A DNA stretch of 48,251 bases, from the NCBI RefSeq assembly GCF_006345805.1, contig NW_021834146.1, forward strand, positions 1 to 48,251, given 5' to 3'. A model generated the notes under the pieces. It was given only the letters and a program-made list of their open reading frames with translations, was not told where the DNA came from and searched no databases. A program made the translations under genes and the position numbers. The stretch's first letter is position 1, and every line of letters begins with the position of its first letter. The stretch is from Octopus sinensis (lineage: Eukaryota). Below, piece after piece: positions 1,119 through 48,251 of the stretch.

Positions 1119-3734
1119 TGTTTCTTTATTAGCCACACAGGGCTGCACACAGATAGAACAAATTACAAGGTAGAGCTTTTCTTTTGAAGGTATTAAAAAA
1201 AAAAAAAATAAAAAATAAATAAATAAATAAAAAGGAAGGGGGAGGTTCGATCAAAAGGGATCGTAAAAGGAGAGAAAGAGGACAAAAATAAGGGGGTTAA
1301 AAAAAAAAAAAAAAAAGGGGGGGAGAGGAAAAAAAAATGATCAATAGGGATCGTTATCACAGAAATGTCAATATGAAGTGTAAAGGGGAGGACAGGTGAG
1401 GTTTACCCGTGGAAAGAAAAGCCTGCGGAAAAGACCACGGTAACCTCGGTCAATGAAGTCACATTTTATATTTCTTTTTTTTTTTTTTTTTTTTTGCAAA
1501 TAAGCAACTCTCTGTTTTCGATTTCTGGGTTCATAGGACTATGCTCAAGGTGGCTTCGTCATTCATACGTGCCATTCTTGCTACATTCACCCATCTTTTT
1601 TTAAAACATTCGCTAGACAAAACTTGCCTCTCTACTCTCACTTTCCTTTTCAAGTGGTACTTGAAGAAGTTGATGAGAGATTGACCAGAGAGGAAAGTGT
1701 TTGTCTCCAATCCTTTCAGACGCGTCCACCAGATACATTCTTTCGCCATAGCCACAAGGATGATGAAAATAGCTCTTCCTTCCCGTTTGAAGGAAGGAGG
1801 CGTGACAATATTGACGATAGACTCAGCTGATAACCGACTCGTCCCACACGTGACAGCAGTTGTTCGACATAAGCCCACAGGTCGGAAATTGTTGGACACT
1901 GAACGAGTGCGTGCAGAACGGTTTCGTTGCTCTGACCGCATCTCGGGCAGGTCGGCCCCGTGTTTCTCGAGCCGTGTCTGTAGAGCTTATCCCGAACGGG
2001 TAGCGCTTCTCGGTAGCACTGCCAGGCCAGGGATCTCTGGAAGTTGTCCATGGGCCCTGGCCCGAAAGTCGTCCCGAACAGGCGGGTCAGGTACTCCTCG
2101 TCGACGTCCAGGTTCGCCCCGAGCTCGTCGTCGTACCTCCCCTCCACTAAACCCCTATAGAATGCTTTGGTTGTGTTGAAGTCACTTAAGGTCGACCCAG
2201 GACGGCAGAGTTGCTTGAGAGCAACGCGACACTCGCGGTGCCATTCGCCCTTCCTCGGCCTCTTTTTGATCCACGACTGCAGTTCGGTCATGGAGACGAG
2301 CTGCGGAAAGCGTGCCTCACAAACGGCGACCACACCTGTTCACCGTCGTCTACATAGAGCCAGAGATGTCGCAGTCTCAGCGCGTGTCTGCGCATCATCA
2401 ACCACGGCATGCCCAGCCCTCCTTTTAACGGTGTTTGACAGCAAATGGATCGCCTGACCATCGGGACGCATCCTTTCCACAAGAAGCGAAAGAGGATGCG
2501 TTGTAGTTTGGTGATGGTAGGGTCGGGACAAGGTACGACGGTCAGGCGGTAGTAGATGACGGACGCGATGTACGTGTTCGCCACCTCCGCTCGACCTTTT
2601 AGGGACAGTTTCCTCTCGGCCCATTGCCGGGCGAGAGTGACCACCCTACTCGTTATCTCGTTCCAGTTCTTCTCCACTTGGAGGTCCGGACCAAACCAGA
2701 CCCCGAGCAACTCAACCGGGCCGTCGGTCCAGCGTCCCACGACGGAGGCGCTGGTGGACGGCATGGGCTTGCTTCTCTCAGGTGCCTAGTCGCAAGCCCA
2801 CTGACTTTTCCCGGTTGATTTTCGCTCCTGTCACCGCTTCGTAGTTTTTCAGTGTCTCGCCGACCAGCTCGATGTGCTCGTGGCTAGACACTATGACGGT
2901 GACGTCGTCCGCGTATGCAGACACGCTCGTCCCGCATCCCAATTCTCGCGGGATGCCCCTTAGAGTCGCCAGCTTCCGCAGTAGTGGCTCAAGAGTCAAT
3001 ACGTATAGAAGCGCCGAGAGGGGGCATCCCTGACGGACCGAACGTGCAATGTCGAAAGGTCTCGATAGATGTCCATTTACGCGAATTACCGAACGGATGC
3101 CTCTGTACAAGGCAGCTATCCAGCCGCGAAGACGGGACCGAAACCAGCCGCTCTCAGGACTGCCTCCAAGTATCGATGGTCTACCCTATCAAAGGCTTTT
3201 GATTGATCCAAGTTGATCAGGGCCCCACCCATGCCAGGTTCGTTAACTACCCTGTCTATGATGTAGCGCATCAGATGGAGGTTGTCATGGATGGTCCGGC
3301 CTGGCACGGCGCATGTTTGCGCCTTGTCGACCAGTTTCTCGATGACAAGCGCCAACCTCTTGGCTAGCCCTTGGCCAAAATTTTCAAGTCTGCATTAAGC
3401 AGAGTGATGGGCCTAAAGTTATCTATTACTTTCCCTTGTTTAGATCTTTCTTCAGCAGTGTTACGGCTCCTCGGCTCACAAAACCAGGAATGCTCCCGTT
3501 TTGCTGCCAGTTGCAGTACACCGCCGCCAAGAGATCTCCAAACAAGTCTGGCATACAATTGTAAAGCTCGTAGGGTAGACCATCCAAACCCGGTGATTTG
3601 TCCCTCGAGCATTCTGCCATCGCTTCCCGCACTTCCGCCGCCGTGATGGCACCTTCGCAGCACCCTGCCTTTCTTGTCGAGAGTCGTGGTAGGCTATGTA
3701 GGTAGGCACTGAAGTCCACCCTACGTTCTTGCCC

Positions 3735-3735
<1 letters not shown>
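1119..3735 (-). mobile_element. L1/Tx1-clade non-LTR retrotransposon, 5'-truncated, frameshifted ORF2
   Basis: RT motifs KSPGLDGLP, NFRPITLLNADLKILAK, LDQSKAFDRV, SVRQGCPLS and YADD, plus C-terminal CPRC...HALVQC, are spread over several frames. ORF2 ends at 1531 and the 3' UTR runs to about 1119. Confidence 0.9.
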
Positions 3736-3775
<40 letters not shown>

Positions 3776-3805
3776 TGTATACAGACAGACAGGTAGATAG
3801 ATACA
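3736..3805. repeat. (GATA)n microsatellite at the 5' junction of the Tx1-like element
   Basis: Directly visible. Confidence 0.9.
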
Positions 3806-5860: not shown

Positions 5861-6129
5861 CTGATTAAAAAAGGATGAAATGAGTTTGATTTTCTGGATA
5901 AGAAATGCTTAACGTGGGAAAAAATTTGAGCTCGTCATTTATGAGAATGTAACTGAGAATCAAAAGTCTTGGTCACCAGAAATAACAATTTGTAAAGACT
6001 TTTATATTTATATATGACCCATGATACTGATACAGACTCGAATCGCAACTCGCAATTCAAACGTCAACATACTGCCTACCCCTTTATTATATCCCTTTTC
6101 ACTACAATACCAGGAATCCTTCGGAAAAT

Positions 6130-13503: not shown

Positions 13504-13681
13504 GTTAATCCAAACATGAAAGCACAAAAAAACACAACGCGAGGACGTGGAACAAATATAGTATTATTGGACGCCCGTTTCTAGCGGAGTTCTTCGTCGG
13601 AAACATAGGAGAAGGAAAGATCCAGAGAAGGGAAGACAGAGGAATAAAAATCACCAACGGTACACACGCGGCCACATTTTG
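13504..13681 (-). mobile_element. Second, degraded copy of the 9634-9845 element
   Basis: The reverse complement aligns with 9634-9845, but the hammerhead core is mutated (CCGACGA) and the 3' stem I strand is deleted. Confidence 0.75.
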
Positions 13682-14979: not shown

Positions 14980-15378
14980 TTCGTGCTACCACAAAGAGAG
15001 AAGAGCAAAGACTGGTAACGGCTCAAGGAGCCATGGAAAGGTCAATGCTTGGTATCTCGTTGTGAGAGCACATCAGTAGCGAGATCATCAGAAAGAAGTC
15101 CGGCGTGAGAGATGTCATCGCAGAGTATACACGCAGCAAGTTTAGATGGGCTGGACACGTCGCCCGGCTCACCGATAATCGGTGGACCCACGCAGTTGCC
15201 GAATGGTACCCACGCGAGCGGAAAATACCACCCGGAAGACCTCCACGACGGTGGAGTTACGATTTCAGGAGGACGATTAGGATCACGTGGATGAGAAAGG
15301 CACGATCCAGAGAGGAGTGGACAGCGTGCTGTGACCAGCGGTGTCAAATGGACGCCTGACGGACTGGTCGGTCAAGTG
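14980..15378 (+). mobile_element. RTE-clade LINE 3' fragment inserted in (TA)n
   Basis: KFRWAGHVARLTDNRWT...WYPRERKIPPGRPPRRW is a typical RTE C-terminus. Confidence 0.85.
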
Positions 15379-28642: not shown

Positions 28643-31497
28643 ATTCTTAATGAAATCAGCAAACAATCAACGCTACTGAGCAACAAAAAGAGAACAAAAA
28701 TGCTCCGCAAATATAACATCACAGAAAAGATTTGCCGGAGATAAAAGAAAAGCTGAAGCAAGATATCCTTGCCAAAGCTCAAAGGATCCGCCAGTACGAG
28801 AACGCCAACGCTTCTTTGAACAGAACAAAAGTTCAACTCCAACCCCAAAAAGTTCTACCAAGAACTGGGAAAAAATAAAATAGAAGTCACTGCAGCACCA
28901 ACGGCAGAAGAATTGGAAGAATTCTGGAGAGAAATATGGTCGGCGAACGAACAGCCAAAAAAAGGAGTATCAAAATAACAAACTCGGCATCTGAACAACT
29001 TTGGACCCCCATAACAACTGAAGAGGTCACCCAGGCACTGCAAAACTAAGCAACTGGAAGGCACCTGGGCATGACAAGATCCCCAACTTCTGGTTGAAAT
29101 ATCTAACAGGAATGCACAAAAAGCTGGCTGAAAACTTTAACAGCATACTAGCAGAGCCAGAGACAATGCCTGAATGGCTCACGAAAGGGAAAACCATCTT
29201 AATTCCCAAATCAAATGAAACAGCAAAACCAGAAAACTACAGACCAATAACCTGCCTCCCTACTATGTTCAAGGCATTTACTGCAGTGATATCGCAAAGG
29301 CTGAACAAGCACTTGGACGAAAACAAACTGTTCCCAGAAGAGCAGAAAGGATGCCGCAAAGCCTCATATGGCTGTAAAGATCAACTAATGATTAATAAAG
29401 CCGTAACTGAAGACAGCCACAGAAGAAGAAAGGCCTCAGTATGGCCTGGATTGACTACAAAAAGGCGTTTGATAGCATCCCCCACACATGGATCCTCGAA
29501 ACACTAGCCATTAACAAAGTAGCACCAACAATCATAAAATTCATAGAGCACTCTATGAATAAATGGCAAACAGTCCTACACCTCCAAACAAAAGAGGGAC
29601 TCATGAAAACCAAAGACATCCCCATTAGAAGAGGAATATTCCAGGGAGACACGCTCTCTCCACTCCTTTTCTGCTTGGCACTGTCACTCTATCTGATATG
29701 CTAAATAGAACTGGATGCGGATATAAATGTTACGCGCAAAACGATCAGCCACCTTTTATATATGGATGACCTAAAACTATACGCTGCAAATGACAAACAG
29801 CTGGAAACACTATTAAAGACAGTTCATGGATTTACCAAAGAATAGATATGAAATTTGGATTAGAAAATGCGCCAAATTAACCATGAAAAGAGGAAAACTA
29901 GTTAAGAGTAACAACATCACACTAGATAAAACCAATGAAATAAAAGAATTATACCAAGCCAAACTTACAAATACTTAGGAATCCATGAACTAGATAAGAC
30001 ACAACACACACAAATGAAAGAGAAAATAAAAAAGAATATTATAGACGAGTTAGATCAATACTAAAAACAGAGCTCAATGCTAAAAACAAGATAATAGGTA
30101 TCAACACTTTAGCTGTCCCAGTTTAAGTTACAGCTACAATATCCTTAACTGGACACGAATGAACTGACCAAATAGATAGGAAAACAAGAAAAATACTGAC
30201 AGGATCTAGGATGCATCACCCAAAATCTGACATAGAAAGACTATATATACAACGTATAGAAGGTGGTAGAGGCCTTATACAGCTGGAAAACTACTATAAA
30301 ATAACCACCATAGGACTGCAAAAATATCTACTTCAGAAGGAAGGAAAACTGATCCAGATAGCAGCAAAACCGAGCAAAACAAAAAACTGTTCTCAGTATT
30401 TAAGGAAGCTGACAAATACAACACAAGAAATCATACCACCTAATAAACATGAGAAGAAGAAGAAGAAGAAGAAGAAGAAGAAGAAGAAGAAGAAGAAGAA
30501 GAGAAGAAGAAGAAGAAGAAGAAGAGAAGAAGAAGAAGAAAAAGAAGAAGAAGAAGAAGAAACAACAAAAGCTATAAAACAAATGAAATCCAAACTAAAA
30601 ATAGAACAGCAACGAACCATGATAAACGATGGCAAGAAAAGCTCCTTCATGGTAAATACTGGACTAAACTAAACGCAAAAGAAATAGACAAAGAAAAATC
30701 CCAGCAATGGTTGAGAAGCTCAGTACTCAAAGCAAAAACAGAGGGATTTTTAATTGCAGCACAAGACCAAAACCTCCCCACCAGAAATTACCAAAAACAT
30801 GTAATGAAAAGAAATATTACAAGTAACTGCAGAATATGTGGAGATGGACAAGAAACAATAAATCATATTATCTCTAGCTGCCCAGTCCTGGCTAAGAAGG
30901 AATATATTCACAGACATGACAGAGTTGGAACCTACATACATTGGAAGCTATGCCAACATTATGGAATAACAACAGAAAAAAAAAGGTATAGGCACACACC
31001 AGAAAAGGTCACAGAAAACGAGAAAGCAACCATACTCTGGGATATGCCAATACACACAGATAGAGAAATTAAGGCCAACAGACCAGATATAGTTGTCAGA
31101 GATCATGAAAACAAAAATGTTTTCTAATTGATGTATCAATACCAGCGGATGACAACGTGTTTATAAAAGAAATGGAGAAACTTTCAAAATACAAAGACCT
31201 GGAAATAGAGGTAACTAGAATGTGGAATCTAAAAACAGAAACAATTCCTATCATAATAGGTGCATTAGGCATGATAAAAAATATTCAGACAAATACATAA
31301 CAAAAACAAAACACACCATTACTTACAACACACATAACATACAGAAAATTGCACTACTAGGCACTGCACACATCCTGCGCAGAACCTTCCATACAATAAC
31401 CATCAGAGCATCACAACAAATCACAGCACATACCCAAGGCACACAGAGCTGTGCTCGGTAGTGAAGTGAAAGCACGATATAAAAAATATACTACTGA
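28643..31497 (+). mobile_element. R4/Dong-clade non-LTR retrotransposon (RT + CCHC + restriction-like endonuclease), 5'-truncated and frameshifted
   Basis: NYRPITCL, EQKGC, WIDYKKAFDSIPH, GIFQGDTLSP, YMDDLKLYA, CRIC...HIISSC...RHD and RPDIV motifs. It has a (TAA)n tail, a (TAA)n 5' flank and an internal GAA tract at 30451-30560. Confidence 0.92.
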
Positions 31498-33707: not shown

Positions 33708-33779
33708 ATATTAACTATACTGGGGAGGAATAAGAAAGCGCCATCTTCATATTTTTCTATTGGGTTGTTTTGCAAATAT
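33708..33779 (-). CDS. LRR exon (YLQNNPIEKYEDGAFLFLPSIVNI)
   Basis: Acceptor gtctctttttcag and donor at|gtaagc. Exactly 72 nt, phase 2-2. Confidence 0.88.
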
Positions 33780-35997: not shown

Positions 35998-36221
35998 CGA
36001 GAAGAAGAAGAAAGAAGTTGAAGAGTAAAAAGAAATAGAAAGAAGGTGAAGAGGAAAAAAGAAGCAGTACAACAAGAAGGAGAAGAAGAAGTAGTAGTAG
36101 AAGAAGGAGGAGAAGAAATAAAAAAAGAGTAGAAGAAGAAGAAAAAGAAGAAACAGAAGAAGAAAAAGAAGAAGAAAACGAAGAAGAAAGAGAAGAAGAA
36201 GAAGAAGAAGACGAAGAAAAA

Positions 36222-36252
<31 letters not shown>

Positions 36253-37633
36253 GAGAAGATGACGAAGATGAAGAAACGAAGAAAAAGAAGTAGAAGAAGA
36301 AGATGAAGATGAAGAAGGAGAAGATGACGAAGATGAAGTAGAAGAAGAAGAAGAAGAAAAAGGAGGAGAAGAAGAAGAAGAAGAAAAAGGAGGAGAAGAA
36401 GAAGAAAAAGAAGAAGAAGAAGAAGAAGAAGAAGAAGAAGAAGAAGACATTAATAATCGTAGTGTTCAAGAAGATAAATAGAAAATGTAGTCAAAGAAAT
36501 AACAGGAGATATTTTAGGGAGACGGAAGAAACGTTTGAGGGAGAGAACATGAAAGAAGAAAAATGAAGGAGGAGACTAAGGAGGCAAAGGAGACGAGGGC
36601 GAAAAAGAAGACGAAGAAGAGAAAGATTTGGAAGATGAAGAAAAAGAAGGATAAGGAGAATTAGAAGAAGAAGAAGGAGAAGAAGAAGAAGAAGAAGAAG
36701 AAGGAGAAGAAAAAGAAGAAGAAAAAGAAGAAGAGAAGAAGAAGAAGAAGAAGGGAAAGAAGAAGAAGAATGAGTAGGACACAAAAGCAAAAGAACAAGA
36801 ATAGGGAGAAGGACGAGGAGGAAGAGGGCAGCTTGAGGTGGAGGAGGGGATTTGAAGGAGGAGGAGGAAAAAAGAAGATGAGGAGAGGGAGAAGAGAAAA
36901 GGAGAGGGGAGGAGAGGAGAGGAGAGGGGAGAAGGGTGGATGAGAGGGGAGGGGATGGCAGAGGAGGTGGAGGAAGAGGAGATTCGGGGGATGAATGAGA
37001 AGTGAAGGATAAGGAAGGAGAAATGTGAAGAAGCAGAAAGCACGGGAGTAAGTTTATCAAAAAAGAGAAGAGGACGAAAAAGAAGGAGAAATGTAGAAGA
37101 AGAAGAAGGGGATGACGAGGAAAAAGTAAAAGAAGAAAAAAGAAGAAGAAGAAGGAGAAGAAAAAAGAAGAAGAAGAATAGAAGAAGAAGAAGAAGAAGA
37201 AGAAGAAGAAAGAAGAAGAAGAAAATAATAAGAAGAAGAAGAAGAAGAAGAAGACATTAATAATCATAGTGTTCAAGAGATTAAATAGAAAATGTAGTCA
37301 AAGAAATAAACGGAGATATTTTAGGGAGACGGAAGAAACGTTTGAGGGAGAGAACATGGCTGAAAACTCAGGGAATACAAATTTAATACAAATTTAAATA
37401 CAAATCGTTGAAATTTGGGAATCCAAAATGAGTTAAAGTGTCAAGAATTGAAACAAAGCAACTGCAATAAAGGAACATTAAATTTGTCCTTTTATTTCAA
37501 ATTCTCTCTCCATTCCTCCCTCTTTCTCTCATTGTGTCTTGCTCTCTTAATCCCACTTTGTATTTCCTAAATCATGTCCGGTTCCCGAGTTTGTTTGGTG
37601 CATGTCCGAGAGTTTATACGGTTAAGAGTGTAT

Positions 37634-38659
37634 AGTTAGTTAGTTAGTTAGTTAGTTAATTTGGCTCAAAAGCAAATTGCAAGGCCATGTAGGGGGACAT
37701 GGAGTTAAGTATAGGGTGGTGTTCATGTAAAGAATTCAGGCCACTTGAGGTCCAGGGAGGCTTTGAACAAAGCGGTCGTCGGCATCTTCACCATCTCGTC
37801 TGGCAGCTTGTTCCACGGATCCGCAACCCGGACGGTGAAATCTCCTGTCCTTCGACTAAGATGAAATCGTCGCAGGTAGAGCTTTTCGGAATGACTCCGC
37901 AGCCGACGCTCTGGAGCATGAGTGAAGAACAGCTCTTTCGAGATGCTGTATGTCTTTGAGGAGATAAGGAGAAGAGGCTTGAATCCCATACTCCAATATG
38001 GGTGTCACCAGCGTGACATAGAGTGGTAGGAATATGGCTGCCGTGAGCATTCCGAATGACCGTCGAATCAAGAACAGAATTCCGCGTGCTTTGTTGGCAG
38101 CATGGACGCACTGGACCGAAGGCGAAAAGGAGGAATCCACCAAGATACCCAGGTCCTTTACCTGATCGGTCCTCTCCAGCAGCAGACGACCCGGCTCGAA
38201 ATCAAGTTGAGTTGCAGGAGTAGAGCCGACAGGCAGATGACAGCACTTTGACACGTTCAGACACAGGTCCCAATCGTTAGACCACTTCCAAATTTGGTGG
38301 AGGCATCGACGAAGATCCTCTATATTACCGCGAGGAGCGACCAGTTTGATATCGTCGGCAAATAGAAGGGTGTGTTGCGTGAGGTCGTCGGGCAAGTCAT
38401 TTATGAAGACTAAGAACAACAAGGGCCCAAGCACTGAACCTTGAGGCACGCCACTGCTCGCACTGGAGACTTCGGACCGCGAACCATTTACTTGGACTTG
38501 GAAGGAGCGATCTGAGAGGAAGGCACCAACCCATCGTACAATATCCGGATGGAAACTATATGCTTGAAACTTGACAAGTAATAGGCGGTGGTTTACCGAG
38601 TCAAAAGCTTTGGCAAAGTCCAATAAAACGATGTCAACAGCATCACTATCATCGAGGAT
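37634..38659 (-). mobile_element. CR1-like LINE 3' fragment, copy 1
   Basis: LDFAKAFDSV, SGVPQGSVLGP, FADDIK and WNKLP motifs, a (TAAC)n tail and an internal deletion after KDIQHLER. Confidence 0.92.
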
Positions 38660-38745
38660 GCGCGTCACCAATTCTTCCATTACTAGTATATATCATCATC
38701 AAATATTACTTTCAAACAGAGTATCAGGAAACTGAACGAACTTAC

Positions 38746-38817
38746 AATGTCTTTAAATTCTTAAACCGCGTGAATATACCTTGTTTGATGGTTGAAATGT
38801 TGTTGGCACCAAGATAC
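38746..38817 (-). CDS. LRR exon, type A (YLGANNISTIKQGIFTRFKNLKTL)
   Basis: Acceptor ...tactgcaacag and donor tt|gtaagt. 72 nt, phase 2-2. Confidence 0.88.
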
Positions 38818-39409
38818 CTGTTGCAGTAAAGAACGAGTAAAAATTATTAAATGGGAAAATATTTGTGATACTACAAAAAGAAGAAGAAGAAGAAGAAGAA
38901 GAAGAAGAAGAAGAAGAAGAAGGAGAAGGAGAAAAAGAAGAAGAAGAAGAGAAGAAGAAGGAGAAGAAGAAGAGAAGAAGAAGAAGAAGAAGAAGGAGAA
39001 GAAGAAGAAGAAGAAGAGAAGAAGAAGAAGAAGAAGAAGAAGAAGAAGAAGAAGAATCAGGCGAAATTATTTCATGGAAGTGTGGACAAATAACCACACG
39101 GCACCACAGAATAAAGAGAACAATGTGAAACAAACAACAGTAGAATATACATAAGTATTATATTAACACTGCAGACACACTCATACATATATGAACATAC
39201 ACGTTTTCAGGAATAAACTTTTGATGCAGACAATTATCAACAGATAGTCATTGTCATGTTCAGACACAATCAAATAAATATAGCACGAATATGAAAAGTG
39301 ATTATGACTTCAAGTAATAGGGAGTGAGAACAAATAGAAATCAGGGAATATTTAAATTAAAGACACATTATATTCCTCATGTATAAACGACAACATTGAA
39401 AGGACTTAC

Positions 39410-39481
39410 AGATTTTGTAAGCTGTGAAGGTCTTGAAACGTTACTTTCTCAACGTTCGAAATTTTATTGTTCTGAAGATTT
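39410..39481 (-). CDS. LRR exon, type B (NLQNNKISNVEKVTFQDLHSLQNL)
   Basis: Acceptor tttcctgcttcag and donor ct|gtaagt. 72 nt, phase 2-2. Confidence 0.88.
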
Positions 39482-40670
39482 CTGAAGCAGGAAAAAATGT
39501 TGCTTATTTTGACGTAGTATGGAATTGCAATAAAATATGAAATATTGTTCGTTTTGTATAGGAAGAAAACCATAGGAAAATAAAATGACAAGAAGAAGAT
39601 GAAGAAGATGAAGAGGAAGGAGAAGAAGAAGAAGAAGAAGAAGAAGAAGAAAAAGAAGAAGAAGATGAAGAAAAAGAAGAAGAAGAAGAAGGTAGAGGTG
39701 GAGGAGGAGAGGAGAAGAAGAAGAGGAGGAGGAGGAGGAGGAGGAAGAAGAAGAGAAGAAAAAGAAGAAGAAAAGAAGAAGAATAAAAGAAGAAGAAGAA
39801 GAAGAAGAAGATAGAGGAGGAGGAGGAGGAAAAGAAGAACCAGGTGGAGAGAAGAAGAAGAAGAAGTAGAAGATGAAGAAAACGAGAAGGTAGAAGAGGA
39901 GGAGCATGAGGTAAGGAGGAGGAGGAGGAGGAGGAGGAGGAGGAGGAAGAAGAAGAGAAGAAAGAAGAAGAAGAAAAGAAGAAGAAAGAAGAAGAAGGAG
40001 GAGGAGAAGAAGAAGAGAAGAAGGAGAAGAAGAAAAGAAGAAGAGAAGAAGAAGAAGAAGGAGAAGAAGAAGAAGAAGAAGAAGAAGAAGAAATAGATGA
40101 TTAAGAATAGTATTAGAGGAAGAAGAAAAAAGAGATGAGAGGTGTTAAGAAGAAGAAAAAGAAGAGAAGAAGAAGAAGACGAAGAAGAAGAAGAAGAAAG
40201 AAGAAGAAAAGAAGAGAAGAAGAAGAAGAAGAAGAAGAAAAAGAAAAGAAGAAGAAGAAGAGAAGAAGAAGAAGAGGAGAAGAAGAAGGAGAAAAAGAAG
40301 AAGAAATAAGAAGAAGAGAAGAAGGAGAAGACGAAGAATAGAAAGATACGGAAGAAGAAAAGAAAGAATTAGAAGAAGAAGAAGAAGAAGAAGAAGAACA
40401 ACAACAACAACAACAACAACAACAATAACAAAAACCACAAGAGAAAGGAGAAGGAGAAGAAGAAGAAGAAGAAGAAGAAGAAGAAGAAAAAGAAGAAGGA
40501 AGAGGAGGAGGAGAAGAAGACCGAGAAGAAGAAGAAGAAGAAGAGTAAAACGGGGAGGAGGAGAAGAAGAAGAAGAAGAAGAAGAGGAAAAAGAAGAAGA
40601 AGAAGAAGAAAAAGAAAATGAAGGAGGAGGAGATGAAGGAGGCAGAGGAGACAGGGGAGATAAAGAAGAT

Positions 40671-40702
<32 letters not shown>

Positions 40703-41112
40703 AGAAGGAGAAGACGAAGAATAGAAAGATACGGAAGAACAAAAGAAAGAATTAGAAGAAGAAGAAGGAGAAGAAGAAGAAGAAGAAGAAGAAGAAGAAG
40801 AAGAACAACAACAACAACAACAACAACAACAATAACAAAAACCACAAGAGAAAGGAGAAGAAGAAGAAGAAGAAGAGAAGAAGAAGAAGAGAAGACGAAG
40901 AATAGAAAGATACGGAAGAAGAAAAGAAAGAATTAGAAGAAGAATAAGGAGAATAAGAAGAAGAGGAAGAAGAAGAAGAAGACAACAACAACAACAACAA
41001 CAATAACAAAACCACAAGAGAATGGAGAAGAAGAAGAAGAAGAAGAATAATAAGAAGAAGAGGAAGAAGAAAAAAGAAGAAGAAGAATAAGAGAAGAAGA
41101 AGAAGAAGAGAA

Positions 41113-41144
<32 letters not shown>

Positions 41145-41821
41145 GAAGAAGAAGAAGAAAGAAGAAGAATAGAAGAAGAAGATAAAACAATGTTGCTTAG
41201 TTTGACATAGTATGGAATTGGCAAAATATATTAAATATTGTTCTTTATGTACAGGAACAATATTATACGAAAATATAAGAAAGATAAGATGAAGAAGAAG
41301 AGAAGAAGAAGAAGAAGAAAGAAGAAGAAGAGAAGAAAAAGAAGAGAAGAAGAAGAAGAAGAAGAAGAAGAATAGAAGAAGAAGAAGGAGAAGAAGAAGA
41401 AGAAGAAGAAGAATAGAAGAAGAAGAAGAAGAAGAAGAAGAAGAAGAAGAAGGAGAAGAAGAAGAAGAAGAAGAAGAAGAAGAAGAAGGAGAAGAAACAA
41501 ATATAAACTAATGGATTGATTTTGTCACATTTCAAATAAAAATCGTTGAAATTTGAGGTGCAAAATCGAAGTGAAACAAAGCAACTGCAATAAAGGAACA
41601 TAAAATTTTTCCTATTATTTCATGTTCTCTCTCAATTTTTCACACTTTCTCCCACTATGTCTCGCACTCTTTCTCCCTATTTGTATCTTCCAAACTCCTG
41701 TTCGGTCCCCAAATTTGAATTGATTTTGCTTATTGCAGTCAGAAAGTTCATACATTTGTGATATATATATCAGCATTATTTATTATTTCAGAATTATTAT
41801 CAAGAAACTGAACGAACTTAC

Positions 41822-41891
41822 AATGTCGTCAAATTCGAAAGCCCATTGAATATACCTTGTTTCAAGCTGAAATTTGTTGCTGTCAAGATCT
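41822..41891 (-). CDS. LRR exon, type A', 70 nt (restores to DLDSNKISALKQGIFNGLSNLTTL)
   Basis: Splice sites are intact, but the exon is two nt short of 72 and both gaps fall in homopolymer runs relative to its paralogues. Confidence 0.7.
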
Positions 41892-43653
41892 CTATAGAAG
41901 TAAAGAAGAGTAAAATAAATTATACAGAAAATATTTGTGATGAAGCGTCAAACAATATGGATTTAGAATGAAAGGAAAAAAAAAAAGACATATACAGTAC
42001 AAGAAGAGAAGAAGAAGGAGACGAAATAAGACGAGGAGGAGGAGAGGAGGGAGGAGAAAGGGGGAGGAAAGAAGAATAAAATGAAGATGGAGGAGGAGAG
42101 AGGACGAAGAGGGGGATAGAGAATGCGGGGAGAAGGAGTAAAATGAGGGTGAAGTAGGAGAGGCGAGGAGGAGAGAGCAGGAGAGATGAGAGGAGGGGCA
42201 GAATGGGCAGGAGGAGGAGGCGAATGAGAAAAAGAGAAACAAGTAGAAGAGAAAGAAAAAGAAGGAGGAAATTAAAGGAGCAGAATGTACGGGAGTAAGT
42301 TTATGAAAAAAAGAGTAGAAGAAGAAGGAGAAGAAGAAGAAGAAGAAGAAGAAGAAAAGAAAAGAAGAAGAAGAAGAGGAAGAAGAAAAAAAAGAAGGAA
42401 GAGGAGGAGGAGGAAGAAGAAGAGGAGGAGGAGGAGGAGGTGGATGAGGTGGAGGAAGTGTAGAAGAAGAAGCAGGTGTGGAGGAGGAGATGAAAAGGAA
42501 GAAGACGTAGAAGAAGATGAAGAAGAAGAACGAGGAGTTAGAAGAGGAGGAGCATGAGGTAAAAAGGAGGGAGGAGGAGGAGGGCAATGATGCGAGGAAG
42601 AAGAAGAAGAAGAAGAAGAAGAAGATGAAGAAAAACGAGAAGGTAGAAGAGGAGGAGCATGAGGTAAAGGAGGAGGAGGAGGAGGAGGAGGAGAATGGCG
42701 ATGATGCGAGGAAGAAGAAGAAGAAGAAGAAGAAGAAGATAAAGAAGAAAAGAAGAAGAATAGAAGAAGAAGGAAGAGGAGAAGAAGAAGAAGAAGAAGA
42801 AGAAAGAGAAGGAGAAGAAGGAGAAGAAGGAGAAGAAGAAGAAGAAGAAGAAAAAGAAATAGATGATTAAGAATAGTATTAGAGGAAGAAGAAGAAAAAG
42901 AGATGAGAGGTGTTAAGAAGAAGAAAAAGAAGAGAAGAAGAAGAAGAAGAAGAAGAAGAAGAAGAAGAAGAAGAAAAAGAGAAAAAAGAAAAGAAGAAGA
43001 AGAAGACGACGAAGAGAAGAAGAAGAAGAAGAAGAAGAAGAAGAAGAAGACGAAGAAGATGAAGAAGAAGAAGAAGCAGAAGAATAAGAAGACATATTTG
43101 AACAAGCATGAAGTATAAGAAGAAATTTAGAAGAAGAAGAAAAGACATGAGAGGAGGTAAATAAGAATAAGAAGAAGAAAGAAGAAGAAGAAGAAGAAGA
43201 AAGAAGAAGAAGAGAAGAAGAAGAAGAAGAAAGAAGAAGGATTGAAGAAGTAGAAGAAGAAGAAGAAGAAGAAGACATTAATAATCATAGTGTTCAAGAA
43301 GATTAAATAGAAAATGTAGTCAAAGAAATAAACGGAGATAATTTAGGGAGACTGGAGAAACGTTTGAGGGAGAGAACATGGCTGAAAACTCAGGGAATAC
43401 AAATTTAATACAAATTTAAATACAAATCGTTGAAATTTGGGAATCCAAAATGAGTTAAAGTGTCAAGAATTGAAACAAAGCAACTGCAATAAAGGAACAT
43501 TAAATTTGTCCTTTTATTTCAAATTCTCTCTCCATTCCTCCCTCTTTCTCTCATTGTGTCTTGCTCTCTTAATCCCACTTTGTATTTCCTAAATCATGTT
43601 CGGTTCCCGAGTTTGTTTACTGCAGTCCGAGAGTTTATACGGTTAAGAGTGTA

Positions 43654-44959
43654 TAGTTAGTTAGTTAGTTAGTTAATTTGGCTCAAAAGCAAATTGCAAG
43701 GACATGTAGGGGGACATGGAGTTAAGTATAGGGTGGTGTTCATGTAAAGAATTCAGGCCACTTGAGGTCCAGGGAGGCTTTGAACAAAGCGGTCGTCGGC
43801 ATCTTCACCATCTCGTCTGGCAGCTTGTTCCACGGATCCGCAACCCGGACGAAGAAATCTCCTGTCCTTCGATTAAGATGAAATCGTCGCAGGTAGAGCT
43901 TTTCGGAATGACTCCGCAGCCGACGCTCTGGAGCAGGAGTGAAGAACAGCTCTTTCGAGATGCTGTATGTCTTTGAGGAGATAAGGAGAAGAGGCTTGAA
44001 TCCCATACTCCAATATGGGTCTCACCAGCGTGACATAGAGTGGTAGGAATATGGCTGCCGTGAGCATTCCGAATGACCGTCGAATCAAGAACAGAATTCC
44101 GCGTGCTTTGTTGGCAGCATGGACGCACTGGACCGAAGGCGAAAAGGAGGAATCCACCAAGATACCCAGGTCCTTTACCTGATCGGTCCTCTCCAGCAGC
44201 AGACGACCCGGCTCGAAATCAAGTTGAGTTGCAGGAGTAGAGCCGACAGGCAGATGACAATTATCAACAGATAGTCATTGACATGTTCAGACACAATCAA
44301 ATAAATATAGCACGAATATGAAAAGTGATTATGACTTCAAGTAATAGGGAGTGAGAACAAATAGAAATCAGGGAATATTTAAATTAAAGACACATTATAT
44401 TCCTCATGTATAAACGACAACATTCAAAGGACTTACAGAGTTTCTAAGCTGTGAAGGTTTTGAAACATTACTTTCTCAATGTTCGAAATTTTATTGTTCT
44501 TAAGATATCTGAAGCAGGAAAAACTTTGACACGTTCAGACACAGGTCCCAATCGTTAGACCACTTTCAAATTTGGTGGAGGCATCGACGAAGATCCTCTA
44601 TATTACCGCGAGGAGCGACCAGTTTGATATCGTCGGCAAATAGAAGGGTGTGTTGCGTGAGGTCGTCGGGCAAGTCATTTATGAAGACTAAGAACAACAA
44701 GGGCCCAAGCACTGAACCTTGAGGCACGCCACTGCTCGCACTGGAGACTTCGGACCGCGAACCATTTACTTGGACTTGGAAGGAGCGATCTGAGAGGAAG
44801 GCACCAACCCATCGTACAATATCCGGATGGAAACTATATGCTTGAAGCTTGACAAGTAATAGGCGGTGGTTTACCGAGTCAAAAGCTTTGGCAAAGTCCA
44901 ATAAAACGATGTCAACAGCATCACTATCATCGAGGATGCGCGTCACCAATTCTTCCATT
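43654..44959 (-). mobile_element. CR1-like LINE fragment, copy 2, split by a 263-bp insertion
   Basis: Same 5' truncation point and internal deletion as copy 1. Insertion at 44260-44522. Confidence 0.92.
44437..44508 (-). CDS. LRR exon, type B, inside the CR1 insertion (YLKNNKISNIEKVMFQNLHSLETL)
   Basis: 72 nt, phase 2-2, with ttttcctgcttcag and ct|gtaagt retained. Confidence 0.75.
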
Positions 44960-45023
44960 ACTAGTATATATCATCATCAAATATTACTTTCAAACAGAGT
45001 ATCAGGAAACTGAACGAACTTAC

Positions 45024-45095
45024 AATATCTTTAAATTCTTAAACCGCGAGAATATACCTTGTTTGATGGTTGAAATGTTGTTGGCACCAAGATAC
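45024..45095 (-). CDS. LRR exon, type A (YLGANNISTIKQGIFSRFKNLKIL)
   Basis: 72 nt, phase 2-2, canonical splice sites. Confidence 0.88.
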
Positions 45096-45637
45096 CTGTT
45101 GCAGTAAAGAACGAGTAAAAATTATTAAATGGGAAAATAGTTGTGATACTACAAAAAGAAGAAGAAGAAGAGAAGAAGAAGAAGAAGGAGAAGAAGAATG
45201 AGAAGAAGAAGGAGAAGAAGAAGAAGAAGAAGAAGAAGAAGAAGAAGAAGAAGAAGAAGAAGAAGAAGAGAAGAAGAAGAAGAATCAGGCGAAATTATTA
45301 CATGGAAGTGTGGACAAATAACCACACGGCACCACAGAATAAAGAGAACAACGTGAAACAAACAACAGTAGAATATACATAAGTATTATATTAACACTGC
45401 AGACACACTCATACATATATGAACATACACGTTTTCAGGAATAAACTTTTGATGCAGACAATTATCAACAGATAGTCATTGACATGTTCAGACACAATCA
45501 AATAAATATAGCACGAATATGAAAAGTGATTATGACTTCAAGTAATAGGGAGTGAGAACAAATAGAAATCAGGGAATATTTAAATTAAAGACACATTATA
45601 TTCCTCATGTATAAACGACAACATTCAAAGGACTTAC

Positions 45638-45707
45638 AGAGTTTCTAAGCTGTGAAGGTCTTGAAACATTACTTTCTCATGTTCGAATTTTATTGTTCTT
45701 AAGATAT
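45638..45707 (-). CDS. LRR exon, type B, 70 nt (restores to YLKNNKISNIEKVMFQDLHSLETL)
   Basis: Splice sites are intact. There are two 1-nt deletions in T runs relative to 44508-44437. Confidence 0.72.
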
Positions 45708-46931
45708 CTGAAGCAGGAAAAAATGTTGCTTATTTTGACGTAGTATGGAATTGCCATAAAATATGAATATTGTTTCTTTTTGTATAGGAAGAAAACCATA
45801 GAAAATAAAATGACAAGAAGAAGGTGAAGAAGATGAAGAGGAAGGAGAAGAGGAAGATGAAAAAGAAGAAGAAGAAGAAGACGAAGAAAGAAGAAGAAGA
45901 GATGAAGAGAAAAAGAAGAAAGAAGAAGGTAGATGAGGAGGAGGAGGAGAAGAAGAAGAAGAAGAAGGAGGAGAAGGAGGAGGAGGAGGAGGAGAGAGGA
46001 GAAGAAGAAAAAGAAGAAGATGAAAAAAAGAAGGAGAAGAAGAAGAAGAAGAAGAAAAAGGTATAGGAGGAGGAGGAGGAGGAGGAGATGGAGGAGGAGA
46101 TGGAGGAGGAGGAGGAGGAGGAGGAAAAGAAGAACCAGGTGGAGGAGAAGAAGAAGAAGAAGAAGAAAAAGAAGAAGACGTAGAAGAAGAAGAAGAAAAA
46201 AGAGAAGGTAGAAGAGGAGGAGCATGAGGTAAAGGAGGATGAGGAGGAGGATGGCGATGATGCGAGGAAGAAGAAGAAGAAGAAGAAGATAAAGAAGAAA
46301 AGAAGAATAGAAGAAGAAGGAAGAGGAGAAGAAGAAGAAGAAAAGAAGAAGAAAGAGAAGGAGAAGAAGGAGAAGAAGGAGAAGGAGAGAAGAAGAAGAA
46401 GAAGATAAAGATAAGAGAAGAAGTTGATTGAAGAAGAAGAAGAATCAGTAGAAGAAGAGAAGAAGAAGAAGATGGGATGAGGAGGAGGAGGAGGAGAAGA
46501 AGAAGAGAAGAAAAAAAGGAGAAGATGAAGAAAAAGAAGAAGAAGAAGAAGAAAAAAAAGGTAGAGGAGGAGGAGGAGGAGGAGGAAAAGAAGAACCAGG
46601 TGAGAGGAGGAAGAAGAAGAAAAGAAGAAAAGAAGAAGAAGTAGAAGAAGATGAAGAAAAACACGAGAAGTTAAGAGAGGAGCATGAGGTTAAAGGAGGA
46701 TGAGGAGGAGAGATGGCGATGATCGAGGAAGATAAGAAGAAGAAGAAGAATAAGAAATAAAGAAAGAAGAGAATAGAAGAAGAGGAAAGTGGAGAAGAAG
46801 AAGAAGAAGAGGAAGAAAAAGAGAAGAAAAGGAGAAGAAGGAGAGAAGAAGAAGAAGAAGGAGAAGAAGAAGAAGAAGCAGCATCAAAGTATACATTTAG
46901 ATAATAGTATTAAGAAAATGAACGAACTTAC

Positions 46932-47003
46932 AATGTTTTTAAATTCGAAATCCCCGTGAAGGTACCTTCTTCGATGGTTGAAATGTAGTTATCTCGCAGA
47001 TCT
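46932..47003 (-). CDS. LRR exon, type A'' (DLRDNYISTIEEGTFTGISNLKTL)
   Basis: Acceptor ctttactgctatag and donor tt|gtaagt. 72 nt, phase 2-2. Confidence 0.88.
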
Positions 47004-47624
47004 CTATAGCAGTAAAGAGTAAAATAAATTATGTGGAAAATATTTGTGATACATCAAACATTGTGGCTTTACAATGAAAGAAAGAAAAAGAAAAAAGATA
47101 ACGAAGAAGAAAAGAAGAAGAAGAAGAAAAAGAAGAAGAAGAAAATGAAGGAGGAGGAGATGAAGGAGGCAGAGGAGACAGGGGAGATAAAGAAGAAGAA
47201 GAAGAAGAAGAAGAAGAAGAAGAAGAAAGAAGAAGAAGAAGAAGAAGAAGACATTAGTAATCAAAGTGTTCAAAAGATTAAATAGAAAATGTAGTCAAAG
47301 AAATAAACGGAGATATTTTAGGGAGACGAAGAAACGTTTGAGGGAGAGAACATGGCTGAAAACTCAGGGAATACAAATTTAATACAATTTAAATACAAAT
47401 CGTTGAAATTGGGAATCCAAAATGAGTTAAAGTGTCAAGAATTGAAACAAAGCAACTGCAATAAAGGACATTAAATTTGTCCTTTTATTTCAAATTCTCT
47501 CTCCATTCCTCCCTCTTTCTCTCATTGTGTCTTGCTCTCTTAATCCCACTTTGTATTTCCTAAATCATGTTCGGTCCCGAGTTTGTTTACTGCAGTCCGA
47601 GAGTTTATACGGTTAAGAGTGTAT

Positions 47625-48251
47625 ATAGTTAGTTAGTTAATTTGGCTCAAAGCAAATAGCAAGGCCATGTAGGGGGACATGGAGTTAAGTATAGGGTGGT
47701 GTTCATGTAAAGAATTCAGGCCACTTGAGGTCCAGGGAGGCTTTGAACAAAGCGGTCGTCGGCATCTTCACCATCTCGTCTGGCAGCTTGTTCCACGGAT
47801 CCGCAACCCGGACGGAGAAATCTCCTGTCCTTCGATTAAGATGAAATCGTCGCAGGTAGAGCTTTTCGGAATGACTCCGCAGCCGACGCTCTGGAGCAGG
47901 AGTGAAGAGCAGCTCTTTCGAGATGCTGTATGTCTTTGAGGAGATAAGGAGAAGAGGCTTGAATCCCATACTCCAATATGGGTCTCACCAGCGTGACATA
48001 GAGTGGTAGGAATATGGCTGCCGTGAGAATTCCGAATGACCGTCGAATCAAGAACAGAATTCCGCGTGCTTTGTTGGCAGCATGGACGCACTGGGCCGAA
48101 GGCGAAAAGGAGGAATCTACCAAGATACCCAAGTCCTTTACCTGATCGGTCCTCTCCAGCAGCAGACGACCCGGCTCGAAATCAAGTTGAGTTGCAGGAA
48201 AGAGCCGACAGGCAGATGACAGCACTTTTTCACGTTCAGACACAGGTCCCA
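47625..48251 (-). mobile_element. CR1-like LINE fragment, copy 3 (runs off the window)
   Basis: Near-identical to copies 1 and 2, with the same internal deletion and no insertion at the homologous site (48211-48240). Confidence 0.92.

Follow-up and report, generated by a model that had tools for sequence, protein, structure and literature searches.

The uncharacterised receptor-like gene LOC115230658 of Octopus sinensis contains an array of leucine-rich repeat (LRR) exons, which in our reading has grown by recent local tandem or segmental duplication and has then partly decayed (probability about 0.75). The gene lies on the minus strand of an unplaced contig (NW_021834146.1), the 48,251 nt of which constitute the window analysed here, and it is 5'-incomplete. 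We identified seven LRR exon-like pieces, E1 to E7 in transcript order (Table 1), by inspecting the results of BLAST searches for which two exons recognised by eye served as seeds; the LRR motif straddles the exon borders. All seven are on the minus strand and have AG/GT boundaries, with AG and GTAAGT in the flanks. They belong to two alternating sequence types, in agreement with an earlier sequence-only reading of this DNA, with the type letters swapped here (its A is our B type, and its B is our A type).

The same reading had expected symmetric 72-nt exons throughout, which holds for five of the seven pieces. E1, E3, E4, E6, and E7, as well as the last LRR exon, E8, comprise 72 nt with AG/GT borders and a split Leu codon, corresponding to one LRR per phase-2/phase-2 exon. 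The exons end in TT or CT, and an A or G as the first base of the next exon rebuilds the Leu codon at the junction, as had been noted. The frame is broken in the two others, E2 and E5, which are each 70 nt long. E2 is missing two single T bases in comparison with E4, E6, the A exon of O. vulgaris, and an O. sinensis paralogue, resulting in an in-frame TGA. E5 is missing two bases in comparison with its intact O. vulgaris orthologue (72 nt, positions 15307-15378 of the locus designated L001 in OX597843.1). The inclusion of E2 or E5 in a transcript would result in a premature stop, and hence two of the seven pieces cannot code. The intact exons are symmetric, so any subset of E3, E4, E6, and E7 could be spliced in frame between E1 and E8. 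As judged from the sequence, the genomic capacity would be up to five array LRRs, compared with three in the public models.

A self-comparison revealed three copies of a block consisting of a reverse transcriptase (RT) fragment and a spacer, at 37114-38700, 43111-44980, and 47082-48251. Their start-to-start spacings of 6017-6023 and 3963-3971 nt correspond well to the periods of about 6.0 and 4.0 kb described previously. The RT fragment matches Pfam RVT_1 (E = 3.5e-23) and represents an RT domain of the type found in retrotransposons without long terminal repeats (non-LTR), 5'-truncated and with an (AACT)n end. The CR1 assignment made in the sequence-only reading is regarded here as provisional. 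If unit 3 is organised like unit 1, another exon of the B type should lie about 0.5 kb outside the window, beyond the contig end. The spacer shows about 70% homology (82% over a 150-nt core) to the sequence after the O. vulgaris B' exon and to that after E5 (41568-41717). This homology suggests that the RT element was inserted once into a B-exon unit, before the unit multiplied.

Blocks 1 and 2 are longer, also taking in the B exon, the A exon, and the short (AAG)n tract separating them, and they reach into a long (AAG)n tract. Segment 38245-39012 aligns with 44523-45284 at 97.8% identity, and 38930-40610 aligns with 45157-46877 at 83.5%. The flanks of E1 and E5 are only 76% identical, whereas the A-B-RT-spacer block is 97-99.5% identical. 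The recently copied unit thus holds two exons, one A and one B, together with the RT fragment and the spacer, and the three-exon cassette proposed earlier describes the period only. A single duplication of a three-exon cassette, considered as the simplest history, was rejected on the basis of this comparison. The (AAG)n sequence accounts for about 5.3 of the 12.25 kb between 36.0 and 48.25 kb (44% of the region), and the ends of the duplicated blocks are located inside the tracts. The tracts within 36000-47251 lie upstream of most of the LRR exons and would read as (CUU)n in the pre-mRNA. Sequences of the (CUU)n type resemble the sites of PTB-type splicing repressors, and GAA/TTC repeats are known to stall replication.

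The timing of the gain was assessed with L001, the orthologous O. vulgaris locus, which is collinear with the window at 94-97.5% identity and shows a divergence of 1.1-3.2%. Its contiguous sequence contains one A exon, the intact B' exon orthologous to E5, exon 8, and the LRRCT exon. In the contiguous interval from the A exon to exon 8, L001 has neither an RT fragment nor an E6-E7-RT-spacer block, and the comparison of exon number with a cephalopod orthologue, suggested earlier as a check, thus revealed a difference. The substitution-only divergence between the units within the window is 1.23-1.76%. This value is no larger than the divergence between the species, indicating that the gain is recent, and these alignments favour a gain within the O. 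sinensis lineage as the origin of the additional block located between E5 and exon 8. The proposal that the array grew by local tandem or segmental duplication is therefore upheld, with a recent date. The O. bimaculoides locus (L003) was too gapped for exon counting and was left out. Among the O. sinensis paralogues, the chromosomal locus L002 has no LRR exon within the 11 kb upstream of its exon-8 equivalent, and locus L006 has at least 10 separate 72-nt AG/GT LRR exons.

Table 1. Positions in the window of the LRR exons, the repeated blocks, and the (AAG)n tracts of LOC115230658.
Feature	Position	Strand	Description
E1	47003-46932	-	B''-type (B-type) LRR exon, 72 nt, intact (DLRDNYISTIEEGTFTGISNLKTL); first exon in both public models
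E2	45707-45638	-	A-type LRR pseudo-exon, 70 nt, in-frame TGA, splice sites intact
E3	45095-45024	-	B-type LRR exon, 72 nt, intact; used by neither public model
E4	44508-44437	-	A-type LRR exon, 72 nt, intact, inside the 263-nt insertion; in XP_036355650.1
E5	41891-41822	-	B'-type LRR pseudo-exon, 70 nt, 2 nt missing
E6	39481-39410	-	A-type LRR exon, 72 nt, intact; in the twin contig's model
E7	38817-38746	-	B-type LRR exon, 72 nt, intact; in both public models
E8	33779-33708	-	Last LRR exon, 72 nt, single copy
E9	27157-27000	-	LRRCT exon, 158 nt; the gene has additional exons as far as about 3889
E4-bearing insertion	44260-44522	-	263 nt, templated; inside the unit 2 RT fragment
Unit 1 RT fragment	37633-38700	-	5'-truncated non-LTR retrotransposon in the gene's orientation; open reading frame 38680-37856; (AACT)n 37658-37633
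Unit 2 RT fragment	43654-44980	-	Split by the E4 insertion: 3' part 43654-44259, 5' part 44523 to about 44980
Unit 3 RT fragment	47626-48251	-	Cut by the contig end
Spacers	37114-37632 (unit 1), 43111-43653, 47082-47625	-	About 520-545 nt
Longest (AAG)n tract	39590-41496		(CUU)n in the pre-mRNA
Other (AAG)n tracts	36000-36770, 37066-37254, 38878-39056, 42317-43275, 45156-45284, 45815-46878, 47103-47251		

Several points weigh against this history. In L001, a scaffold gap of 100 N (13571-13670) immediately precedes an (AAG)n tract and the A exon, which means that the O. vulgaris assembly breaks at this array too. The exon counts are comparable only downstream of the gap, with E1-E3 outside. A loss in O. 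vulgaris, instead of a gain in O. sinensis, is formally conceivable. With the E1 and E5 flanks only 76% identical, the order of events is tentative. The window is an unplaced contig ending inside the third unit, so the copy number could be mis-assembled. A twin contig, described below, may stem from the same reads and hence provide no independent check, and Gnomon may have selected E4 for one gene model and E6 for the other arbitrarily. In exons 8-11 (33779-20470), which are about as diverged from O. vulgaris as the introns, the comparison with L001 yielded 15 nonsynonymous changes and one synonymous change in 513 nt, with all of the cysteines conserved. Relaxed constraint and positive selection would both account for this 15:1 ratio.

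The twin contig, VCDQ01005852.1 (L005), carries LOC115230659 and is 48,326 nt long; it is also unplaced and shares its start and end bases with the window. The two contigs are 99.4-99.55% identical, and all seven pieces are of equal lengths in both, including the two 70-nt ones. They probably represent haplotigs or a redundant assembly of one locus. The earlier suggestion that the LRR number varies between individuals finds no support in these two assembled copies, as they carry the identical seven pieces with identical lengths. Within E6, we observed two A/G differences between the twins, at 39453 and 39440, which are 13 nt apart and both nonsynonymous (I/V and M/T). The O. vulgaris exon has the states of the twin's E6, indicating that those of the window are derived. 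The window-specific E6 variant was sought in the other fetched loci as a gene-conversion donor and was not found there.

The repeats do not appear to originate from uncollapsed haplotypes. The units are 99.8-100% identical to their counterparts in the twin and 96.4-98% identical within one contig, and they also differ structurally; this source was rejected because the copies within a contig are far more different than those between the twins. A broader possibility is that the array is an assembly artefact, in which the assembler, working from noisy PacBio data, failed to resolve a repeat and mis-joined or over-expanded what are really one or two units. The unplaced contig, the common stop of both twins at the same base within the third unit, and the odd look of the E4 insertion within a retroelement fragment would be consistent with such an error, as would a region that is 44% (AAG)n and at which the O. 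vulgaris assembly also breaks. However, units that are 1.2-1.8% apart and structurally different, and that nonetheless match their twin counterparts at 99.8-100%, display the reverse of the pattern of uncollapsed haplotypes. The 6-kb and 4-kb units are also within the ordinary span of long reads, and the junctions of the E4 insertion exhibit clean microhomology and no chimeric-read signature. Moreover, the 1-nt indels relative to O. vulgaris are symmetric (86 deletions and 95 insertions). We therefore consider an artefact to be very unlikely. The symmetric spectrum also provides no sign of a deletion-biased error behind the 70-nt exons. Homopolymer-deletion errors as their cause are conceivable but not supported, since both contigs agree and the indels are symmetric.

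E4 had been counted as a cassette member, but it resides within a separate insertion in the RT fragment (Table 1). The unit 2 RT fragment is broken exactly between the sites corresponding to unit-1 positions 38242 and 38245. The 263 nt inserted there match the E2 segment, which precedes them by 1.2 kb in the transcript, at 98.9% identity, and the E6 segment at 96.6%. The insertion junctions read ...GTCAAAG/TTTTTCC... and ...AATTGTC/ATCTGCC... (slashes mark the junctions), with microhomologies of 1 nt and 4 nt (TGTC). Two nucleotides of RT sequence were lost, and there is no target-site duplication. This junction anatomy suggests that the insertion probably arose by microhomology-mediated templated repair.

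Beside the insertion site, we also detected a 17/18-nt match, TGTGTCTGAAC[G/A]TGTCAA, between the RT fragment (about 38241-38258; 44524-44541) and the 3' part of the A segment (e.g., 44280-44297). The match is too good for chance, yet it does not explain the observed junctions. Unequal exchange between the matching sequences was rejected, as the observed order does not fit.

The differences among the copies are concentrated in the exons. When the A-type copies were compared with one another and with the O. vulgaris exon, 8 changes fell within the 72 exon nt and 3 within the 196 nt of flanking intron (Fisher p = 0.0016); all eight exon changes are nonsynonymous. E4 and E6 differ at seven positions, all nonsynonymous, with four of the seven at the x positions of LxxLxLxx. 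Between E7 and E3, there are 2 differences in 72 exon nt, both nonsynonymous, versus 3 in 562 flank nt. This exon-biased, nonsynonymous pattern in the sequences fits diversifying selection, which ectopic gene conversion from paralogous exons could mimic.

The variation also bears on the possibility that LOC115230658 is a decaying gene copy; that is, a truncated non-functional paralogue in which the exon copies are neutral by-products of (AAG)n instability and none adds to a working protein. Neutral decay would hardly produce exon copies that are about 7-fold more different than their flanking introns by nonsynonymous changes only, with the caveat that ectopic gene conversion could mimic this pattern. 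In addition, all of the exons in the public model are open, the cysteines are all conserved between the species, and the seven splice-site pairs are all intact. The features suggestive of decay are the broken frames of two of the seven exons, the 5'-incomplete gene without a GPS/seven-transmembrane (7TM) part in the window, the 15 nonsynonymous changes against one synonymous change in the comparison with O. vulgaris, and the introns full of retroelements and microsatellites. On balance, we judge that a decaying copy is unlikely.

The isoforms annotated for O. sinensis paralogues by NCBI differ in exact 24-residue steps (409/385/361/337, 13 isoforms; 525/501/477), implying that exon skipping is at least modelled for the family. 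Together with the 10 or more such exons in L006, these steps render the in-frame skipping of modules, as put forward in the sequence-only reading, plausible for the family. As a speculative and rather unlikely extension, combinatorial splicing of the 72-nt exons might present different LRR subsets as different binding surfaces. The repertoire would then be renewed by recent duplication, diversifying selection on the concave-face residues, and loss, with the (CUU)n tracts serving as both recombination hot spots and splicing-repressor platforms. If so, the family would be a generator of cell-surface diversity alongside the expanded octopus protocadherins.

Duplication followed by partial decay is proposed to have proceeded in four steps, which we infer from the sequence comparisons, while the structures themselves were read directly. 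First, the fragment of a LINE (long interspersed nuclear element) would have been inserted once behind a B-type exon. Subsequently, the block [A exon - short (AAG)n - B exon - LINE fragment - spacer] would have undergone two or more copying events inside the array, either close to the O. vulgaris split or later. The long (AAG)n tracts at the block ends probably promoted misaligned recombination or replication restart. In the third step, microhomology-mediated templated repair would have placed the 263-nt A-exon piece inside the LINE fragment, and in the fourth, E2 and E5 would each have lost 2 nt and become pseudo-exons.

The locus is already present in public annotation, as an uncharacterised partial protein. 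A protein search identified XP_036355650.1 ("uncharacterized protein, partial") as the product of LOC115230658. In a tblastn search, it mapped at 100% to E1, E4, and E7, then to E8, E9, and further downstream exons, with its end at about 3889. The protein thus joins E1, E4, and E7 to both the exon at 33779 and the LRRCT exon, confirming that the array leads to these exons. The NCBI model of the window is E1-E4-E7 and that of the twin contig is E1-E6-E7, so each uses three of the seven array pieces and skips four. The earlier view of a lengthened ectodomain was not sustained, given that two of the seven pieces cannot code and the public models use three of the seven. The locus is a case of ordinary exon birth and death, and not of proven protein lengthening.

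The translation of the five intact exons with E8 and the LRRCT exon matched Pfam LRR_8 (E = 2.5e-41) and also LRR_4, in keeping with tandem 24-residue repeats of the LxxLxLxxNxI form. In the AlphaFold model, the LRR and LRRCT part had predicted local distance difference test (pLDDT) values of 69-97 by block, mostly above 80, and the best fold matches of this modelled part in the PDB were LRRTM2, LRIG1, NgR, VLR, and Slit2 D3. The LRRCT exon encodes ...NNLMKCGCHLPAFV...GTC...YSQC, a region covered by the LRRTM2, NgR, VLR, and Slit2 D3 matches. A signal peptide and an LRRNT cap are present in the paralogues P0002, P0013, and P0067 and in locus L004; those of the gene in the window would lie past the contig end. 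LOC115230658 belongs to an octopus-specific family with extracellular LRRs of the Slit/NgR/VLR type, an LRRCT, a Cys-rich module, and further modules. Throughout this family, each LRR of 24 residues is encoded by a single 72-nt phase-2/phase-2 exon, and these exons come in two sequence types that alternate.

Some members of this family are annotated as adhesion G-protein-coupled receptor (GPCR) G6-like. Several of the closest O. vulgaris relatives bear this name, and one of them, P0056, has a GPS domain and transmembrane (TM) helices. No GPS/7TM part was found in the window, to which residues 1-149 of the 403 in P0056 map and its GPS and TM part does not. The gene may continue past the contig, or this copy may be without the GPS/7TM part. 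The public model ends at 4101-3889 (minus strand) with ...VPKVLMITLLF*, and the O. vulgaris protein P0036 has the same ending; P0056, unlike this ending, splices on to the GPS and TM helices.

The modules downstream of the LRRCT had no Pfam match and were modelled poorly by AlphaFold. They include the Cys-rich module that follows the LRRCT (22190-22083 and 20658-20470, minus strand), which ends in ...CTGCCVGHLCNKN and likewise has no Pfam match and a poor model. Its ending is reminiscent of the Ly6/uPAR pattern. Residues 250-343 of XP_036355650.1 (about 16694-7708, minus strand) were modelled as beta-alpha-beta-beta-alpha with a pLDDT of 70-85, and this segment is repeated twice in the O. sinensis paralogue P0034. 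Speculatively, it might be SEA-like. Two other retroelement pieces with RT-like open reading frames were observed, at about 1246-3800 (minus strand, GC content 0.53) at the 3' end of the contig, and at 29094-31127 (plus strand) in the intron separating exon 8 from the LRRCT exon.

The arrangement of one LRR per exon of about 72 nt in phase 2 is known from the genes for Slit and for the glycoprotein-hormone (gonadotropin) receptors/LGRs (Little et al. 2002 and Koo et al. 1991, as these are cited in PMC6642158 and PMC11378527). The octopus locus shares with them the 72-nt exons with one LRR each, the phase-2 introns, the capacity for in-frame duplication or skipping, and the extracellular LRR and LRRCT fold. 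In contrast, its duplications are very young (1-2%) and confined to one species lineage; a LINE fragment duplicated along with the exons marks them, and pseudo-exons are among the copies. The rest of the octopus protein, with its Cys-rich and unknown modules, is unrelated to Slit and LGR.

Lamprey and hagfish VLR cassettes are without splice sites and are assembled somatically by gene-conversion-like copying. The octopus array resembles them in its LRR/LRRCT fold class and in that a variable number of LRR modules would set the binding surface. However, all seven octopus pieces have canonical splice sites and are arranged in transcript order in a germline array. Every octopus module is an ordinary exon, and the locus is therefore not VLR-like.

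The ROCO genes of brown algae also have tandem 72-nt phase-2 LRR exons, for which duplication and alternative splicing were observed (PMC11378527). The likeness to the octopus locus extends to intragenic duplication, diversifying changes at the variable LRR positions, and, as modelled in the octopus annotation, splice variants that differ in LRR number. Unlike the octopus protein, the ROCO proteins are cytoplasmic and belong to another kingdom. Their variants were derived from transcripts, whereas those of octopus are annotation models of paralogues only.

Group 3 of the octopus-specific adhesion GPCR expansion forms tandem clusters and shows signs of positive selection, and LRRs were reported for 5 of its 22 members (Ritschard et al. 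2019, PMC6408891). The G6-like names of the closest O. vulgaris relatives and the GPS and TM helices of P0056 are reminiscent of this group, and the window differs from it in encoding no GPS/7TM part. The strongest expression of this possibly related expansion was seen in axial nerve cord, suckers, and skin (PMC6408891).

The principle of modular 72-nt LRR exons is thus textbook knowledge for Slit, LGR, and ROCO, and the locus described here adds a new and very young instance from a family specific to octopus. It offers a clean, datable case in which an LRR binding surface changes through exon birth and death, with a co-duplicated LINE fragment marking the copies. The sister species keeps the pre-duplication state for part of the array, and a microhomology junction shows the pasting of a single exon. 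If transcripts reveal varied combinations of the intact copies, this octopus receptor-like family would become a candidate surface-diversity system.

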